Of a stretch of DNA of 64,000 nt, positions 1,758-27,080 are shown one piece after another. How positions within the stretch are numbered: the first letter of the stretch is position 1; each line of letters opens with the position of its first letter. The translations under genes were made by a program, and so were the position numbers. The stretch comes from Phaeosaccion multiseriatum (lineage: Eukaryota; Protista; Ochrophyta, other classes): the NCBI GenBank assembly GCA_965112735.1, contig OZ218951.1, forward strand, positions 186,001 through 250,000. Direction: 5' to 3'. A model generated the notes under the pieces. That model worked only from the letters and a program-made list of their open reading frames with translations, searched no databases and had not been told where the DNA came from.

Positions 1758-4700
1758 ATGACTCACGTGCTTCGCAGCTGTGCCAAGCATGCGAGGAGCG
1801 CCCCGTGTATGTCGCATCTAGGCGGCAGTCGCAGCAGTAGGAGCCGGGAGAGAAAGAGTAGCAGCAGCGGCTCAGTGCTCGTCCCCGCCCACGTCGCCAG
1901 CAGAAGGCCCAGGCCACCGGAGATTGGCGGTGCGGTATGCCTCCCGTTGCAGGAGGAGGATTGTCCTCTTCGTCACGCAGCGCCGGGCTGTATCCAGGGG
2001 CTGCACAGACCGACAAGGTTGCCGGGAGTGTTAACTCTGGGGCGGGGAATGGGTCCTGGAGTAGCCTTAGCAGCCGCCTCCGTGCCAAGGTACTCGGGAG
2101 AGGCGCAGGAGCTTCCCCAGTGCAGCCGGCAGCTTCGGCACCTGAGCTCGCGAGGGGGAAGGGGCAGAGGAAGAGGGAGGGGTGGGCGAGGTGGCATTCG
2201 GCCTAGAACGCCCAGGGTTCCTACGGAGGGAGGGGGAGACAAGGAGGAGGAAGCGGAGAAGAAGAGCAAAAAGCCGAAGTATTTGCTCAACGCGGATATC
2301 AAGGACAAGGAAATACGCCTCGTCACAGGTCAATGGCTGTGTCAGTTTGTGTGTGTGTGTGCGTGTTTGTTTATATGTTGCGTCACTGGTTGCCAGATTG
2401 GAGTGTCTGTTGATGCTCAAGTTGCCCCCCCCCTGTGTGCCCCCACCCATCTGCCTCCGTCTGTCTCCATCTGTGGTGCTGACAGTGGCTGCGGATGGGA
2501 CATCAACTTCGGAGGTGGTGACCCGCCAACTCGCGCTGTCCATGGCTCTCGACGCGGGTCTGGACCTCGTCCTGAGTAAGTGATACAAGAAGGGATATGG
2601 TCCTGAGTAAGGGATACAAGAAGGGGCATGGTCCTGAGTAAGGGATACAAGAAGGGGGGTGGTCCTGAGTAAGTGATACAAGAAGGGGGGTGGTCCTGAG
2701 TAAGTGATACAAGAAGGGGGGTGGTCCTGAGTAAGTGATACTATCCTGAGTAAGTGATACAAGAAGGGGGGTGGTCCTGAGGAAGTGATACAAGAAGATG
2801 AATGGTCGGGGAAGGTTCTGGGAGAGCAGTGGCAAGCATGGTGAAACTTTCCTCTCCTCCCCGAGCCGATCCTCCCACCCTCGCTGGCGCACGCCTATGA
2901 TGGCCTGCTGCCCACCTTAGGCCCTACCCCTCCCCTCCCGCCCCAGTAAATGCCAAGGCCCAGCCCGTGGTGTGCCGCATCATGGACTACCGCAAGGAGC
3001 AGCACCGTCAGAGGGCAGCCGCCAAGAAGGCCTCCATCTCGGCCACTGGCGGTAATCGGAAGGCGTCGCAGCAGAAGGAGATCCGCTTCAAGGTCAGGAA
3101 GGAAGGAAGGAAGGAGGGAGGGAGGGAGGGAGGGAGGGAGGCAAGCAAGCACGGAAGGAACAAATGAAAGGGGGCAAGCCAGGCAGGCAGTCAGTCAGTC
3201 AGTCCGTCAGTCAGTCCGTCCGTCCGTCCATCAGTCAGTCAGGCGACCCAACAGCCAGACCATTTGGGGGAGTACGGGGGGTGTGCGGATGGCATGGTGC
3301 GGGGCCATCCGACCTCTGGACATTGCACCATACCCAACGCAAAACCTAACCGAGACTCTTCCACCGTGTTCCCCTGCCCTGCCCGTACGCCGCCAACTGG
3401 CTCGACCGACCGACCGACCGACCGACCGACCGACCAACAGGGTCTCATCACCGACCATGACCTGGGTGTGAAGCTGTCCCTGGTCCGCACCATCCTCTCG
3501 CAGGGAGACACGGTCAAGCTCACGCTCAGTGCCTTCCCCAGGCTGCTGCAGAGACAGCCCGACTGCCTCGCCACCTTGGAGGTACAGAGGGATGGGGGTC
3601 GCAGGGACCCAACTTGGTGGGACCCAACTTGGTGAAGGAGGTGATTGAGCAATTGCTGACCAATCGCTGACCAGTTGCTCTTCGCTTCTTTCTCTCTCTC
3701 TCTCCCTCCCGCTTTCTCTCTCTCCTTCTACCCCTCCCTCTCTCTCCCTCTCTGGTTTAGGCCCGCATCCTAGCTGCGCTGAACACCGAGGACGTGGCGG
3801 AGGAGGAAAGGGTGGCAGTGGATATCGGAACCAACGCAAAGCCCACCATACGTAGGGAGATGTTCGTCAGCCTCAAGATCCCGCTGGTCAAGGTGAGAGG
3901 AGTAAGGGGTGTCAGGCTCAAGCTTGCTCATGAAGAAAGGGGTGTCAGGCCCATATGCTTGCTCATGCTTTGTGCCAAGGGCGGGTTCCAAACCGGTTTT
4001 GCTCGGGCGGTGCGGTGGTGCGGTGGTCGGTTACGGCAGAGGAGCTGTAACTCTTGGCGACTCTAACGCCCCTGATCCTCGCTGCGTGCGTGCTCCCGCC
4101 CCGTGCTTGCGTGGCGACATGCCCATATGCCCAAGCCCCTCGCTCCCCCCTTCCCTCCATCTGAGGGCTTTGGTTCCCTCCATCTGAGTGCTTTGATTCC
4201 CTCCATCTGAGTGCGTTGGTTCCCTCCCTCCGATCTTCTTTGCTTGCTGTCTGCTTTGCGCTGCAGACGGTGCAGAGGGAGGCTAAGACGAAGAAGGGCG
4301 TGACTTTCGTCAAGAGGGAGAGAGAGGCCGCCCGGCTACAGAGAACAGAGAAGGCCATGAGGGACAAGCAAAGGCAGAGGGAGGAGATGCAGAGGAGGCT
4401 GGAGGTAGGTGACTGACTGACTGACTGACTGACAGACAGACTGACTGACTGACAGACAGACAGACTAACTGACTGACTGACCAGCAGAGTTGGAGGGAGG
4501 CACCGATCGGGCATGCGCATGTTGGAAGTACGGGGCTTGGCAGATATTCAATCGGTCTGACTTTCGACTCTCGGGGCTTTGGACTCATTCTTGTCTCACT
4601 TGCTCTCTTCCTGGCCGGAGGCTTAACACTTGATTTTTGTCTGCACGTCACTGCTGTATCGTATCACCAACTCGCATCGATGTTGTGGGCCAAAGGTGGA

Positions 4701-11221: not shown

Positions 11222-12704
11222 AGAGAGGGACGCGACAAGCGAACAGCATGGAGCATCAGCATGGGGCATCCAGAGTCATCAATCAGTGTCTAGCACCAGC
11301 CCTCCATGTCGGACCCAGTGACCCTCCAGCAACAGCACCCCAGCAAGTGAACCCCCCTTCCGATCATCACCTCGCCGTCCTGTGACTGCTCCCAACTCCG
11401 TCCCTCCCTCACCTGTCCCTGCACCTCATCCCCCTCTCGCAGCTCGTACAATGTGAACACCTCCCCGATGCGGTCCTCGGCCTTGACCCAAGCGAAGATG
11501 CAAGCCGCCACCTCCGCTGGGCTCTTGAAGAACAGCGTCAGTCTGACCCGGGGGTGGGAGGGTGGGGGGGGTGTCCGCAGGGGAGAGGATGAGGGTTGAG
11601 GATAGCAGATGTGAGCTTTGAATGACGACCATGTGCAAGTAGGAGGCGGGCTGCTGGCTGGCTGAGCAGGAAATATGAGCAGGAAGATATGGAGGAAACG
11701 AACGAAGAAATGGAGCAGGAAACGAAGGAAGAAATGGAGGCGGGCTGTCTGGCTTCCTTCCTTTATTCCTCCATTTTTCCCTTCGTTTCCTCCATTTCTT
11801 CCTTCCTTCCTTCCTTCCTTCCTTCCAGACTGAGTCGAACCTGGTCTGGGCGGTGTCGGTCCACTCCGCTCTCCCCTCCTTCACAAGCTGATCTACCACC
11901 TGGGCGAGGAGCACGCACGGGGGGGAAAGGGGACGGTATATCGTGCGTCAGAAGGGGAGTTGCGGGGGTTGGTTGGGTATGAGGAGGGGGGCGGGGTGCT
12001 CGACTTCGGCATGCATGCATGCGGTCACGGCCCGAGCATGGCCATCAGCCACACAAGCCACCATAGCAATGGTAGTTACGTTAGTCGTCATCAATCGCGG
12101 GTGTTGCGGGCCAAGCGTACGTGTGCCTGCGGCCGTGCCTGCTCACCTGCTTTGCAGCGGCCCCGTCCAACCTCCGCCGGATGGAGGGGTTCTCCCACAG
12201 CGACCACTCCTTCCACGCGAAGTGCTGCTGCTTGCGGCTGCTGTGGTACTCCAGCACGAGGTCCATCCACAGCTTCAGCTGCTTCTCTCTGGCGGAGCAG
12301 AGGCAGTGAGCGGGAGCGGGAAACGTGGACAGGGGGAGGGGAGGGGACCAGGGAGGGAGAGGGGAGAGAGGGTCACCGAGGCGGCGCAGAGTGGGAGGAG
12401 CGAGGGGTGGAGAGAGGGGAGAAAGGAAGAGGCGGCGTCACATTCACGAAGTCATCGTCTTCACCTTCCCCCTTTCTATATTCCCCATGTCGTCCGTTCT
12501 CCTTGAGCTCACTCCGCCCCCTTGACCCTCCATGTCTTGGCGAGTGCATATGTCTACGCACCACTCCTCAATCACTCCTCACCTCGTTGCCAGGACGGGC
12601 TGCAGCGTGAAGAAGGGCGGGAAATGGTAGAACTCAGGCAGGGCGGACGAGTCCTCGCTGTCACTGCTTCCGACGCTTGTGATGCTTGCGCTGAGCTCCG
12701 CCAT
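11011..12704 (-). CDS. VPS25: ESCRT-II subunit VPS25, 5 exons
   Basis: LPEFYHFPPFFTLQPVLATR / EKQLKLWMDLVLEY...WENPSIRRRL / VVDQLVKEGRAEW / FKSPAEVAACIFAW...VFTLYELREGD / EFYGLEEAAFRKAIAVLEREGKAELF...DGVKFF; canonical GT-AG junctions. Confidence 0.95.
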
Positions 12705-19520: not shown

Positions 19521-20165
19521 ATGTCTAAACCCGCAGCAGCAGCAGCAGGAGGAGGAGGAGGAGGGGGGGGCAAGCAGCACCAGGAGAACGTGCTGAACCT
19601 GGAGAAGTACCTCGACCAAGGCGTGCGAGTCAAATTCCAGGGAGGGAGGGAGGTGTCGGGCACGCTCAAGGGATACGATCAGCTCGTCAATCTCGTGCTG
19701 GACGGCTGCGTGGAGACTCTCAGAGGTGAGTGGGCAGAGGGCGGTGGGTGGTGCTGTGCCGAGTGAGGCTCGGGAGTAGCAGGTGTATCTTATGGAAGGT
19801 GAGGGCAAGCAGTGGAGAGATTACTGGGTGTTGCTGCTCCTGCTACTGCTGAGAGTGCTGGGAAGTGTATGGTTAGGAGCCTTGCTAAGGTCGCCCTGGG
19901 AGGCAGCGAAAGCAGAGAAGTTAAGGCCAGCCTGCGCCCAACGCTCCCCCTTCTTTGATGTTGGTCTGCCCGCCATTGACCTCCATCCTCTCCTCTCACA
20001 CCCCTGACACTGTTGCACACAGACCCCAGCGACCCCTACCGTATGACGGACGAGACGCGCACCCTTGGTCTGGTGGTGTGCAGAGGGACGCAAGTGAGCC
20101 TCATAAGCCCGCTGGACGGCATGGAGGAGATCGAGAACCCCTTCACCGCCGGGCAAGAAGGTTGA
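19521..20165 (+). CDS. LSM7: U6 snRNA-associated Sm-like protein LSm7, 2 exons
   Basis: ENVLNLEKYLDQGVRVKFQGGREVSGTLKGYDQLVNLVLD...LR|DPSDPYRMTDETRTLGLVVCRGTQVSLISPLDGMEEIENPF; intron ~19726-20022. Confidence 0.97.
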
Positions 20166-20420
20166 GGACGAGGAGAGTCTGGCGCAGGACGGGAATTCCG
20201 CTTCTGTGCTACCTTTGGAGTGCTCGGCGATGGATTGCTGCAGCGGTGGGGGGGGGCTTCGGTCTGTGTGTCCGCCTCCCCGCCCCTGCAGAGCCACTGC
20301 CGCCCACGGGGAGGGAGGCCACGCTCGCGCGCTCGAGGCTCCTGAAGGGGAGGCCCAGAGTAGGCAGGCAATTGCTGGTTCTACCTACCACCCTGCCGCC
20401 ACATTCGTCTGCTCTCCCTC

Positions 20421-20864
20421 ACGGCCGTGAGGGTGGACAGCCCGTCCGCTGTGCTGGACACAAGGGGCCCGGGATGGTGGACCTTAAGCACAAGAGATGC
20501 CAGCACGAAGGGTGTCAGGCAGCGTCCTCTTACGGCCGTGAGGGTGGACCGCGCGTCCGCTGTGCTGGACACAAGGGGCCCGGGATGGTGTGCTATAAGA
20601 AAAGAAGGTTGTCATGAACCACCTTCGACATGTCGTCAGCGTCTTACGCATCCATGTAGAAGGTGGTTCATGACAACTTTCTTTTCTTGTAGCACACCAT
20701 CCCGGGCCCCTTGTGTCCAGCACAGCGGACGCGCGGTCCACCCTCACGGCCGTAAGAGGACGCTGCCTGACACCCTTCGTGCTGGCATCTCTTGTGCTTA
20801 AGGTCCACCATCCCGGACCCCTGGTGTCCAGCACAGCGGACGGGCTGTCCACCCTCACGGCCGT
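20421..20864. repeat. Long inverted repeat: 212-bp arms (20421-20632 / 20653-20864) with a 20-nt loop
   Basis: Arms align without indels; ~5 mismatches by eye. Confidence 0.95.
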
Positions 20865-21051
20865 AAGAGGGGTGTTTCCGACACCCTTCGTGCTGGCATC
20901 TCCTGGCCGGGGAGGCGCTGGTTTCAGACGGCGAACAGGCGCCATAACAGCAAAAGGAGCAGCAGCTGCGTCTCAGCAGATGACGTGTCGGGGGCTGAAA
21001 GTGAACATGAACCCACTGTTGCTGGTGCCTTGGGCACAGAACACAAGGCAC
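20668..21051 (-). CDS. EsV-1-7 cysteine-rich repeat protein (two repeats); 5' end unclear, possibly a pseudogene
   Basis: CQHEGCRKHPSYGREGGQPVRCAGHQGSGMVDLKHKRCQHEGCQAASSYGREGGPRVRCAGHKGPGMV matches the EsV-1-7 motif C-x4-C...C-x2-H...GMVD. No in-frame ATG was found upstream of the repeats. Confidence 0.7.
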   Translation of the reverse strand: MPCVLCPRHQQQWVHVHFQPPTRHLLRRSCCSFCCYGACSPSETSASPARRCQHEGCRKHPSYGREGGQPVRCAGHQGSGMVDLKHKRCQHEGCQAASSYGREGGPRVRCAGHKGPGMVCYKKRKLS

Positions 21052-21564
21052 TCTCTCTCCTCCTTCTCTCCGGAGGGAAGCCGGAGGCGGCGGGACACGT
21101 TCGCTGGTGAGGGTGCGGCTTTGCTTTCCCTGAGGCTTGGAGCCCTAGCGGCACTCTGAGTCTGGAGCTGTGTCCGAAGCTTCCGAGTCTGAAGCTCTGG
21201 AGCCTTTCTATTTCTAGAGTCTCCAAGCCAGGGGGCTAGGAAAGTAGTGCGGGACTGCTCGCCCCGCTCTTCTGAAGGGTTATGAGAGTCATAAAGAGTG
21301 AAATGAAGGTTGTCGTCTCATCACAAGATGCTTGCTTATCCATCACCCTACGGTCCACTTCCCTCCCTTGATCCTCCCTTCCCGCCCACCTCTATCCTTT
21401 CCTTCTCCCTCTCCCACTATGACGTCCTCTCATCTTATCACTCACCTCACCTACCTCGACAGAGCGCCAATGCCGATTGAGTCGACATGAAAACTCGCAG
21501 AGGTCGAAACCTCCTCCAAAAAATCGACCTTGTTAAAGCTCCTCATCTTCCCCTCTCTTATAGG

Positions 21565-23766
21565 ATGGGGCCTGTGTTCCTCTTCCTCGTCGTCCTCAGC
21601 TTCCTCGCCATCGGATGGAGCGCCGGACAGCACCTTCCGCTCCCTCCACTGCCTTGTAAGCTCTCCTTTTTTTTCTTTTTCCTTCTCCACTTTCTCCTTT
21701 TAATTCAATCTTTCTCCCCTTTCAGACGAGTACAACGCCCTGGAGCCTTTCATCAGCGAGGCGGCTCTCCGTAGACACCATCTCGTGCATCACAAGGTAA
21801 AGACTCTCTCTTTTTCACCGCTGTTTAGCACGATCGCCTCTGAACACCTCGTTCCCCCCGCTGTGTGTTCAGGCGTATGCAGACAAGCTCAATGACACGT
21901 TGGAGGCAATGCGCTGGAACGAGGTAAGACAAGAGGAGTGGTGGGCTGTATCCGTCCAAGAGCAGAGCAGATGCTTATTTTCTCCCCCCCCCCCCCAATT
22001 ATATTTGTCGGGGTGTTGTCCTGTCTTATCGGAGCAGGACCTCAAGCACCTCCCAAAGATGGGCATCGACAAGCTGCTGCAGGAGCCCAACCTCGCCCAA
22101 GTCCCCGACGAGTACCGCTTGACCATCAGGCAAGACACAATGCCCGGTCCGGTCCACCGCACTCCCTACCTGACTCTACTCCCCTCTCTCCGTCTCCGTC
22201 CTCCCCCCCCACTTCCTTCCTCGCTGCAAACTCTACTCCAGGAACGCGGGGGGCGGCTTTGTGAACCATGCTCTGTTCTGGCGCTGCCTGGCCCCGTCGG
22301 CGAGCGGCAGCCCCAGCAACAGGTGGGTATTATTATTTTATGTGGGGGGTTGTGTGTCCGCCCCCGGCAGTGCGTGTGCCGTGGCCACTGCCAGAAACCA
22401 CGGCTGCTAGTCGCTCCCTCGGGGCCATCGGGGCCACAGTGATTTCCCTTCGAGAGCCGATCCGCCGACTGTCTGTCTCGTTGTTGTTGCTTGTCCTTAC
22501 TTGCGGCGCTTCCTGTCCCCTCTCTGTGCCTGGCCCCTCTGTACAGTACCGAGGAGGGGAAGAGGCTCACCTTGGCGCTGTCGGAGGCATTCGGCAGCGT
22601 GGAGGCCTTCAAACAAGCCTTTACGGACAAGGCCCTGCAACTCTTCGGTGCGTGGGTTGGTGTGCGTATGTGTGTGGGGATGTGGGAGTGGGAGTGTGTG
22701 GGTATGTGTGGGTTGGAAAGGACGCAGAGCTGGTCCTGGACAGGACCACATCCCGACTCGGAGTTTCAGAGTACCATACCAGATCGGAACCCCTCAGATC
22801 CTCAAGCGGTTTCCAAGCCCCACGCCACTGCTCCACCTGGCGTGTTAACCCTACACTTCCACCCTAACCCCCTAATCACAGGCTCCGGGTGGGTATGGCT
22901 GGTGTACAACAACCGCAGACACCCCACAGGGCAGAGGGGGAAGGGTACTCTGGAGCTGGTCACCACAGGCAATCAGGACACCCCCGCCGCTGACGCCGCC
23001 GTCTTCCCCCTTCTGCTCGTGGACATGTGGGAACGTGAGTTGTGGGAGGGAGGGGGAGGAGGGAGGGAGGGAGGAAGGGAGGGAGGGCGGGAGGCAGGCA
23101 GGCAGGCAGGGAGGGAGCGAGGGAGGGGGGGCAGGGAGGGAGGGAGGGAGGGAGGGAGGGGGGCAGGGAGGGAGGGGGGCAGGGAGGGGAAGGAACGGAG
23201 GGAGAGAGGGAGAGAGGGAGAGACGGGGAGGAGCGAGGGAGAGAGGGGGAGGAGCGAGGGAGGGAGGGAGAGGGGAAGGAACGGCAGAAGGGAAGGAGGG
23301 AGGCGAGGGAGGAAGGGAGGGAGGAGGGAGGGAGGGAGGAGGGAAGGAAGGAAGGAAGGGAGGGAGGGAGGGAGGGAGGGAGGGAGAGGGGAAGGAACGG
23401 AGGGAGGGGGAGGTGCGAGGGAGCGAGGGAGAGGGGAAGGAACGGAGGGAGAGAGGGGGAGGAGGGAGAGGGGAAGGAACGGAGGGAGGGAAGGAGGGAG
23501 GGGAGGGAGGGAGGAGAGGGCTTGGCTTAAGTCCTGTGACCCTGACCCCCAATTCATTCCTTCACTGCTGCCTGTCTGTTGGCGACGCGGCAGATGCCTA
23601 CTACCTGGACTACCCGGAGGCGAGAGAGGAGTGGCTGACAGCCTTCTGGAAGCTCGTCAACTGGCAGGAGGTGGCCAACAATCTCAGCGTGGCCATCACC
23701 AAAGGCGTGGAGCAACACACAGAGGGGCTGGAGCGCGAGCATGCCGGCGCCGAGGGGGACCTCTGA
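21565..23766 (+). CDS. Fe/Mn-family superoxide dismutase (Mn-type signature) with N-terminal signal peptide, 8 exons
   Basis: [31 protein letters not shown]...RNAGGGFVNHALFW...FGSGWVWL...NQDTP...VDMWEHAYYLDY. All four metal ligands are present; GGG and NQD indicate the Mn type. One GC-AG intron (22130-22241). Confidence 0.93.
23044..23520 (+). repeat. Polypurine (GGGA/GGAA)n intronic tract
   Basis: Lies within the last SOD intron; potentially G4-forming. Confidence 0.9.
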
Positions 23767-24588
23767 TGTTCAAACTCAAACTCTCATTCAGGACCACCTC
23801 CTGCGCGGCTGGCGACGATGTGGAGTGAGCTGCGCCGGCTTCTCGGCTGGTCTATATCGTTCCTCTGTCCTCCCCCTCCTCCCACCCGGTCTGGCCTGAC
23901 CTGAGCATTTGCAGCCCTGCCAGCGCCGCTCAGCGCAGGAGCTGAGCTCGCCCCTCCAAAGCGTTGTGAATGTGTCACTCACAAGAGTGGACCTTGAGGC
24001 CGAGAAAGCGACGAGAACGTGTGGGCATAGGCATAGGCATAGGCATAGGCCTCTTCCTTTCTGCAGACTTTGAGCAGAGCTTCTGGCTGGCTCCTTTTCG
24101 CCGCCCCAGGCCTTGATGCATCTCAACGACGGCGGAGGTCGAGTGCTGGCTGGATAGAGACGCGGCACCCGCCGGGGGGGTGAGGTGCTACAGAAACACT
24201 TCATCGGCCCCATCCTCTTCTCTCGAGTGATGTGTGAGGAGCGGAGAGCCAGAGGTGTTGGTGCTACGGCGCAAGGGCAATGTGACTGTGAGTGTGCCAA
24301 GGCACACACGCTTGGCTTAGCTGCCTTGGCCTAAAGGGGCAACAGGAGCAAGAGACGGCCTCCAAGATACTTTTTGAGGCTATGATACTATTTATTTTAT
24401 TATAAAAATACATAAAATTCAAGTCTTATCAAAATATGAAAGGAAAAAGGAAAGGATTCTGTCTTCATTCCACCAGGCGTGAAGGCGTGAAGGTGCGAAG
24501 GAGTGCGTATCTCAGTAACAGTAGCATAGCAGTAAGAAGCCGCGGTAGGAATGGAGCAGTTGGTGAACCATCGGTCGTCGCCATCCGA

Positions 24589-26458
24589 TCACAAGTGGAA
24601 ATGCTCGGGCACGGGCAGGAAGATGGACTGCCTCGCTCGCCCATCCACGGCCTTCGAGCGGTGCCCCTGCTCGCCAGGCCGGTTGGTGATACGGCCGCAG
24701 AGCCAGGGGGAGGTTAGGGGGGCAGCACTCGAGCACTACAAACGATATCGACATCGTCGACATTACACAACGAGTGCCTTGAAGTCTTGTTCCCCAACAA
24801 AGTTGACACAATACACATGGCTGATGATACCCCCCACCCCGTCCCATCTCCCCCTCCCCAGCCCCACGAAAGGCCTCCGGAGGCCTCCCCTTGTGCCTTC
24901 ACTTCACTTCCACTCACCTTGCCCCACACATCCTCGAGTAAGAACACCCCACCTCTCGGCACGACTCTTACTCTCGGCTCTCCGCTGCTCACCTCCAGCG
25001 ACACCGCGGCGGTGAGGTTCACCACAAACTGCCTTCGGGGGGCACAGTGCCAGTCAAATGCGTAGTTGCCTGCGTGGGAGGGAGGGAGGGAGGAAGGGGA
25101 GGGAGGGAGGGAGGGAGGGAGGGAGAGAGGGAGGGAGGGAGGGAGGGAGGGAGGGGGGGAGGGAGGGAGGGAGGGAGGGAGGGAGGGAGGGAGGGAGGGA
25201 GGGAGGGAGGGAGGGAGGGAGGGAGGGAGGGAGGGAGGGAGGGAGGGAGGGAGGGAGGAGTGAGTACGTGGGCGAATGAGGCAAGCCGGCGGGCAGCGCG
25301 AGGCACCGAACTCAAACATAGTATGACCAAGGAATGGTCATCCTAGCGAAGCGGCGCAAGCCAAGGCCAGGGACTCACACAGGGCGAGTCAGCGAGTCTC
25401 GCTCACTTCAGGGGCGCTCTCAACGGTCTGAAGGAGGCCTAATGGACTGAAACTGATACCTGGGGTGGTTCTAAACTGCATGCCTTGGCAAGGAAATATG
25501 CTGGACAACGCCCCGATGGCGTTCCCACTCTCTGCTTCCGAGAGGAGGGGAAGGCAGGCAGAGGGGTGGAACGAGAGGTGGGGCATAGAGAGTGAGAAAG
25601 AAAGAGGGGCATAAGAGGGAGGGTTGGGATGGCGTGTAGGCGTGCTTGGGACGGCCAGAGGGGAGGAGGCGCAGGAGACATGATACCCATAATACCCAAT
25701 GACCACCCTCAGCAACCCCTCAAGTCAGCAAGTCAGCAACCCAGTAAGTCAGCAAGTTAGCAACCCCCTAAGTCAGCAAGTCAGCAAGTCAGCAATCCCC
25801 TGTCCCCCCCTACCTGCTGCTTCGCCTTGGCCGCCCCCCGCCCGTCCCTTCCCTCCCACGGCGATGCGCTTGTCTGTGAAGAAGGTGTTCCCGTCCCCGT
25901 CAACGCTGATGCATGGCAGCACCCACCGCCCCTCTGAGTCCACTTCCACCCCCCCCTCTCCCCCCTCCTCCCCCGCCGCGTCTCGGGCCGCAGTGTCCTC
26001 TCTCCGCCTCTTCTCTCCCCGTGAGCTCCCGTCGGAGAGCGGCGAGAGTGACTGGGAAGATGGGTCTGCTGGCGGGTTGACGTAATGTAGAGTAGAGCAG
26101 GGCGGGGTAGGTAAGGGGGCGAGCAGCCAAAATACACGCTCCCAAGTTTCATATCCGAGATGTGAGGAGGAGAAGGTTCTCGACTTACCTACTGGCAAGG
26201 GCATGGCGGTGTGAGCGTCCCCTCTCTCTAGGCCCTCCAGCTGGGTCTATGCAGCAAAGCAGACACGCGCACACGCATTGGTAGGAGGAGAGGGTGGGTG
26301 GGGGAAACGAAGGGAAAAGAAGCGAAAGGGGGGGAACGGAGGCTCCATGTAGGCAGGAGCTAACGCCGTGTTTACGCTTCTGATTGACGGACGCCAAGCC
26401 CTTCCAGCCCCTCTTCCCTCCCATGGCGTCACGGGGATGGGGTGGTGCAGCAGCATCC

Positions 26459-26492
<34 letters not shown>

Positions 26493-26500
26493 CGTCGTCG

Positions 26501-26578
<78 letters not shown>

Positions 26579-27080
26579 CAAGTTACCTGTGCCTCCCACA
26601 GTAGCGCCATGTCTCGGGGGTGGAAGGCCACCTCCTCGCTCTCAAGCAGGTCCTCCTGATGAGAGAGAGAGGGGGAGCAGAGGAGGGGAGAACGGCGTAG
26701 AGGGGGGGAAGAGGGGAGCAGAGCAGAGCGGAGGGAGGGGGGTTAGTGAGCCACGCTGCGGCCAGCGGAGGGGCGGCAGGTAAGCGTGTTGGTGGAGGGA
26801 GGCAGAGGCGCCTTAACCTCACAATAGACACCTCCACACAGGACCGGGGCCCTACCTCGGTCAGGCGCAGGAACAAATGCCCGTCGATGCCGAAGAGCAG
26901 CAGTGCGTCCAAGGTCTCATCCCGCAGGGAGGGGAAGCGCGCCTTGAGCCATTGCATTAGGCTGCGCGTGCCCCAGCTGGACGGAGGAGAAGATTCGATG
27001 GGAGCTGCTGTTGCTGCGGGTTGGTTGGAGGATGCAGCACCCACAGAATCATCTCCAGTGTCGACAGCCATCTCCGACAT
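24589..27080 (-). CDS. SAM-like domain + bacterial-type cupin domain fusion, 7 exons
   Basis: N-terminus WGTRSLMQWL...LLLFGIDGHLFLRLTEEDL (SAM pattern). C-terminus ISVDGDGNTFF...MQFRTTPGNYAFDWHCAPRRQFVVNL...VFLLEDVWGKGHRSKAV (cupin). Exons splice in frame. Confidence 0.75.
25074..25260 (+). repeat. (GGGA)n microsatellite, intronic
   Basis: Seen directly in the sequence. Confidence 0.9.
26447..26578 (+). repeat. Compound (CAG)n(CAT)n microsatellite, intronic
   Basis: Follows the CAG|GTAACT donor of the SAM-cupin gene on the minus strand. Confidence 0.9.

Follow-up and report, generated by a model that had tools for sequence, protein, structure and literature searches.

Is the inverted copy of gene sequence found on contig C2 a working source of small RNAs, or is it the scar of a repair event that struck a gene of the EsV-1-7 family? 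Fold-backs derived from genes are the proposed raw material of new hairpin-RNA and microRNA genes. An earlier note on this DNA had read the locus as a recent inverted duplication with the potential to silence the EsV-1-7 family in trans. The window, which is the whole 64,000-nt stretch analysed here, corresponds to C2:186001–250000 in a 67.1-Mb genome of 22 contigs with about 60% G+C. The locus lies about 206 kb into the 5.99-Mb contig C2, with unique flanks on either side.

A repeat search of the window located an inverted repeat with arms at 20418–20632 and 20653–20867. Each arm is 215 nt long, the arms are 97% complementary, and 20 nt separate them. Comparing the arms base by base revealed six substitutions (four transitions and two transversions) and no indels, a divergence of 2.8%. 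The interval 20421–20864 given in the earlier note, with 212-nt arms and about five substitutions, is the same repeat minus its outermost 3 nt, which include one mismatch; the 20-nt loop and the indel-free arms described there agree with both analyses. Within each arm we observe a tandem periodicity of 111 nt, whose units are 88–90% alike and equal the 37-codon EsV-1-7 repeat.

The right arm (20653–20867, minus strand) is the parental 3' end and holds the last 66 codons of an EsV-1-7 frame, its stop at 20668–20670 and 15 nt of the 3' flank. The left arm (20418–20632, plus strand) is the derived inverted copy. It contains 1.6 EsV-1-7 repeats, a TGA stop at 20615–20617 and 15 nt of 3' flank, and it starts in the middle of a repeat, with secure homology from 20421 onward. 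The 20-nt single-copy spacer between the arms (20633–20652) belongs to the original 3' flank of the parent and is the loop of the hairpin. The tetranucleotide CATG is present at the inner end of each arm, and the outer junction coincides with an 8-nt palindrome, ACGGCCGT, which encodes Tyr-Gly-Arg of the repeat.

Four of the differences between the arms are non-synonymous, one is synonymous and one lies past the stop. This is what neutral change would give, with no sign of selection on the copies, in numbers too small to settle the matter. The arms share an identical core of 127 nt, and a run that long has a probability of about 0.03 given six mismatches. The core may result from conversion between the arms, or the duplex may be under constraint. 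Having persisted until its arms diverged by 2.8%, the long palindrome must at least be tolerated.

The earlier note had suggested folding this region and had expected a long stem in any transcript that crosses it. Folding of 20400–20900 (501 nt) as RNA agrees: the predicted stem spans about 215 bp and reaches about -500 kcal/mol on either strand (-500.5 on the plus strand and -498.2 on the minus strand). Shuffled versions of the same interval yield approximately -196 ± 7 kcal/mol, corresponding to z scores of -42.7 (plus) and -41.1 (minus). With z near -42 against the shuffles, a chance origin of the fold is excluded. The locus is therefore a long, near-perfect inverted repeat capable of intramolecular pairing, with 215-bp arms and a 20-nt loop, as in hairpin-RNA genes.

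The two arms differ in how they end, and this indicates which of them is original. The left arm is cut off mid-repeat, whereas the right arm runs outward into a complete repeat. In addition, a segment of about 50 nt (20643–20692), which extends from mid-spacer into the inner part of the right arm and includes the last codons and the stop, has homologues elsewhere in the genome. It is 87% identical to C2:3518641–3518693 and homologous in part to C16:746872–746945. The alignment to these loci runs unbroken over the boundary between spacer and right arm. Therefore, the right arm and the spacer are ancestral, and the left arm was inserted as a copy. The earlier note had likewise taken the minus-strand copy for the parent, and both the mid-repeat end of the left arm and the continuous homology across spacer and right arm bear this out. 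The arm comparison and the translation equally uphold its view that the 3' coding end and the stop of a minus-strand EsV-1-7 gene underwent a recent inverted duplication.

Because the 50-nt segment occurs at other loci, the last eight codons and the stop of the parent have an origin separate from the repeats. When the left flank was aligned as a continuation of the segment common to the C2:3518641 and C16:746872 loci, its score was not significant, being reached by 27 of 300 shuffles. The segment is low-copy, being common to the three loci in the window, elsewhere on C2 and on C16. The C16 copy closes a 111-aa ORF ahead of a GT donor, and the C2 and C16 copies also resemble each other in the first part of the intron. 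The ORFs that carry the segment at these other loci matched no Pfam family.

A second fold-back, unrelated to the one in the window, is located on the same contig at C2:3518829–3519452. Its arms of 309 nt are 96% alike and separated by a 6-nt spacer, and weaker pairing extends out to about 380 nt (C2:3518763–3519523) in single-copy, coding-looking sequence. The outer weak pairing lies 70 nt from the C2 copy of the 50-nt segment, and the 96% arms about 135 nt away from it. Given this second, unrelated case on one contig, we read the fold-back as a recurrent type of mutation. A palindrome scan of the other EsV-1-7 loci found no fold-backs.

The parental gene is represented by an open frame at 20668–21051 on the minus strand with two cysteine-rich EsV-1-7 repeats (C-x4-C-x15-C-x2-H). 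The frame matches the Pfam family EsV_1_7_cys (PF19114) over two repeat stretches with a score of 60.7 bits (cut-off 25, E 1.2e-16), and it was also recovered by a genome-wide search for the EsV-1-7 family. The right arm encloses its stop together with 15 nt of 3' flank. The repeat units at 20695–20794 and 20806–20905 (111-nt units) are 88% identical. In both repeats, all four ligand positions (Cys-x4-Cys ... Cys-x2-His) are intact, and the two can be aligned with 39 repeats located elsewhere in the genome. They differ at eight amino acids, none of which is a ligand residue, an outcome expected by chance with a probability of about 0.3 (hand calculation).

There is no in-frame ATG in the parental frame; an ATG at 20945 is one base off frame. 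The earlier note had taken the missing start codon as a sign of conversion into an RNA gene. The codon is indeed missing, but the argument built on it is weak, since the repeat exon could be joined in frame to an upstream ORF. We notice a speculative upstream exon at 21451–21690 (minus strand) that possesses an in-frame ATG and has a GTAGGT donor at its end, with the GT at 21454–21453. Judging from the splice motifs, an AG acceptor at 21030–21029 would hold this candidate exon in frame with the repeat exon. The absent ATG is thus no proof of a pseudogene.

Word-based searching of public proteins with the 127-aa ORF returned no match, and an exact look-up of the ORFs across the palindrome centre in public collections gave none. 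The spacer had no match in a metagenome scan. Against Rfam, the locus produced only sub-threshold chance matches (mir-335 at 24 bits versus 64, U6atac and Chlorobi-1). Taken together with its repeats and its tail, the parent looks like a lone, divergent two-repeat member of the EsV-1-7 family, truncated and chimeric in appearance. It also looks like a dispensable member of what is a large family: the genome contains at least 67 EsV-1-7 repeat matches, grouped into roughly 20 gene clusters. Relatives outside the brown algae are reported to have 31–54 members of the family (bioRxiv 10.1101/2024.02.19.579948), with which this count broadly agrees.

The gap of about 2 kb between LSM7 and a superoxide dismutase gene is taken up by the EsV-1-7 relic together with its fold-back. 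LSM7 (19521–20165, plus strand) converges on the parent and comprises exons at about 19521–19725 and 20023–20165, each of which, searched separately, matches the LSM domain. Its stop at 20163–20165 is 252 nt before the left arm, and the convergent LSM7 some 250 bp off in the earlier note is thereby confirmed. In the protein collection, the best match to LSM7 exon 1 shows 83% identity, and the best named match is Tribonema minus (79%), with Fibrocapsa (77%), Chrysoparadoxa (76%) and Vaucheria (67%) after it. Phytophthora and other oomycetes, at 64–69%, are interleaved among the algal matches. These matches point to a stramenopile alga close to the lineage of the brown algae.

On the other side, a domain match marks the C-terminal domain of an Fe/Mn superoxide dismutase at 22875–23033 (plus strand). 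The frame of this gene (22491–23828) enters low-complexity sequence, several hundred nucleotides long and coding for GGREGG-type repeats, which is probably intron or repeat sequence and not protein. Other low-complexity features are scattered through the window. Tetranucleotide arrays resembling (CAGT)n and (CTGA)n, at 3177–3242 and 4410–4481, are mutually inverted and about 1.2 kb apart. A small purine/pyrimidine-rich palindrome of low complexity occupies 11681–11803, with 51-nt arms (84%) and a 21-nt spacer. At 26185–26783, a trinucleotide repeat gives rise to long homopolymeric codon runs, which, according to frame, read as poly-Asp, poly-Met or poly-His.

The fold-back duplication is genuine and fairly young. 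The inverted copy adjoins its original, the spacer between them is single-copy, and the flanks are unique; across the 67-Mb genome, the arms are single-copy, as is the 1 kb upstream. Fold-back repair characteristically leaves a single-copy spacer and 2–8 bp of inverted microhomology; in yeast, 4–6 bp are enough (PMC3907307). The CATG and the palindromic outer junction fit a fold-back model, although the CATG could also simply be the innermost bases of the arms.

We propose that the event began with a break or a stalled fork some 35 nt past the EsV-1-7 stop codon. The 3' end would have snapped back on itself, probably through the self-complementary CATG at the edges of the 20-nt spacer. Some 212–215 nt of the gene's own 3' end would then have been copied in reverse and rejoined to the flank.

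What would such an insertion do to the gene that received it? The inverted copy has neither a promoter nor a start of its own and begins 35 nt after the parental stop, so its sole predictable effect is in cis. Since the copy lies this close to the stop, any full parental mRNA buries the last 66 codons in a near-perfect duplex of 215 bp. This duplex should block translation and serve as a Dicer substrate. Most likely, the event disabled a lone, divergent EsV-1-7 gene or left it silencing itself, and the parent is probably crippled by the fold-back. On balance, we favour the view that the locus is a young fold-back duplication scar, left by break repair or template switching, that disables or self-silences its parent and is not a selected regulator of the family.

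A scar and a source of siRNAs are not mutually exclusive, and the genome is equipped for the latter. Domain matches identify one Argonaute (PAZ at C13:416749 and Piwi at C13:419.6–420.9 kb, together C13:416749–420865) and one RNA-dependent RNA polymerase (C1:3767137–3770084). Two Dicer-like genes combine Dicer_dimer and RNase III domains, one at C1:4938046/4947333 (span C1:4938046–4947887) and the other at C2:3566810/3563452 (span C2:3563452–3566917). With Argonaute, two Dicer-like proteins and an RdRP encoded, siRNA production is possible and would very likely follow if the hairpin is transcribed. The 215-bp near-perfect stem predicted here is of the siRNA type and argues against a microRNA gene.

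Which transcripts could these siRNAs reach? The earlier note had envisaged repression of the EsV-1-7 family in trans, and this finds no support. In a comparison with 30 other EsV-1-7 loci, no uninterrupted run in common with the arms exceeded 12 bases, and the nearest paralogue of the parent has only 42% protein identity. The genome-wide BLAST search for targets that the earlier note had advised, in which the best candidates were scored, returned the two arms and one unrelated match of 42 nt, and no separate antisense target. We therefore reject silencing of the family in trans on sequence grounds, as no complementary EsV-1-7 locus was found beyond the parent in these comparisons. Pairing would thus be confined to the parent, or to an LSM7 transcript that reads through the hairpin.

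This leaves a narrower proposal, in which the locus already works as a hairpin-RNA (endo-siRNA) gene: the parental transcript or LSM7 read-through would be diced, and the products would regulate the parent, or LSM7 through a shared 3' UTR. We consider this unlikely, and it survives best among the alternatives. The predicted duplex is near-perfect over 215 bp on either strand, and the arms have a 127-nt identical core in common. The required RNAi genes are encoded. Transcription through the locus is plausible, as it sits between convergent genes about 500 nt apart. The arms derive from a protein-coding progenitor, namely the 3' end of the adjacent EsV-1-7 frame, as is the case for Drosophila hpRNAs (PMC10317233) and for young plant MIR genes (Allen 2004, cited in PMC5381526). 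However, the parent is the only complementary target, and the differences between the arms look neutral. In Ectocarpus, the nearest studied lineage, no derivation of miRNAs from protein-coding genes was detected (PMC4513859).

A shared 3' UTR would raise a further objection to a working hairpin-RNA gene, one that concerns the neighbour. LSM7 is an essential splicing and decay factor, and siRNAs on its 3' UTR would threaten it.

Palindromes are also a known class of artefact. It might be argued that the locus is a chimeric palindrome, generated by long-read fold-back reads or by amplification, which we regard as very unlikely. Fold-back chimeras at the read level would instead produce long, identical arms, typically at contig ends. 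The arms here are short, they differ by six substitutions without any indel, and they lie between unique flanks deep inside a 6-Mb contig. Moreover, the copy stops at a defined point within a repeat.

Could both arms be translated, as two convergent EsV-1-7 genes arranged tail to tail? Both arms have kept an open frame with its own TGA stop, and the frame of the left copy is open back to 19955. This upstream frame, however, crosses the intron and the second exon of LSM7 in another frame. The left copy begins mid-repeat, includes only one complete repeat and has no Pfam match by itself, and the arms differ by four non-synonymous changes to one synonymous. We find this arrangement highly improbable. 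A transposon origin, as a MITE-like element or as terminal inverted repeats around an EsV-1-7 module, is hardly credible and was rejected: a Mariner transposase of Ectocarpus has gained an EsV-1-7 domain (PMC12477816), but the arms and flanks here are single-copy in the 67-Mb genome, no transposase ORF is present, and target-site duplication is absent at 20418/20867.

We return to the scar of fold-back duplication, the reading preferred above, and compare it with known systems. Like the fold-back duplications that arise from break repair or replication template switching (PMC3907307), the locus consists of an original and its inverted copy around a short single-copy spacer, is embedded in unique flanks and represents a single, non-recurrent event; the CATG at the inner arm ends may correspond to the short self-complementary motif that bounds such spacers. 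The human cases differ in scale, being megabase-sized with kilobase spacers and terminal deletions (PMC3907307), whereas the duplication here measures 215 bp, has a 20-nt spacer and is interstitial. In yeast, templated inverted insertions at breaks are mostly 5–34 bp long (PMC11724301), and the locus is intermediate in size.

In its repeats, the parent resembles the EsV-1-7 genes of brown algae and their relatives, for example IMMEDIATE UPRIGHT (bioRxiv 10.1101/2024.02.19.579948), and contains two canonical cysteine-rich repeats. It departs from other EsV-1-7 genes in being at most 42% identical to its paralogues, in its foreign-looking tail and in an exon that has no evident start codon. By itself, the locus is an ordinary structural mutation.

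Young plant MIR genes arise by inverted duplication of their target genes (Allen et al. 2004, as cited in PMC5381526). They share with our locus the proposed birth by fold-back of target-gene sequence and the extended similarity of arm and target, while transcription and processing have been demonstrated for the plant proto-MIR loci. The microRNA criteria call for a short imperfect hairpin and one precise miRNA/miRNA* pair (PMC4513859), and a 215-bp near-perfect stem is not miRNA-like.

The locus could come to work like the hpRNAs of Drosophila, such as hp58 of D. simulans, which was born beside its progenitor CG17385 (PMC10317233). In both systems, a fragment of an exon has given rise to an inverted repeat of some 200 bp that adjoins its protein-coding source and forms a near-perfect duplex, and by analogy the expected product would be siRNAs antisense to the progenitor. 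The Drosophila hpRNA is a separate transcription unit, for which Dcr-2-dependent siRNAs and derepression of the target have been demonstrated by experiment (PMC10317233). A hairpin-RNA gene proper is recognised by one transcript across both arms, Dicer-dependent small RNAs of 20–24 nt and a separate target. The inverted copy described here is instead placed within the 3' end of its own parent, and no other target was found for it. It could serve as raw material for a hairpin-RNA gene rather than being a demonstrated one. That the fold-back is transcribed and diced, which would make it a newborn hairpin-RNA gene within the very gene it came from, in an alga related to the brown algae, strikes us as quite unlikely. 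If true, it would be the first case in this lineage of small-RNA birth by inverted duplication of a target gene, of the type found in plants and Drosophila. An alga that combines a complete set of RNAi genes with young gene-derived fold-backs would be a convenient system in which to ask if such scars get diced and become regulators.
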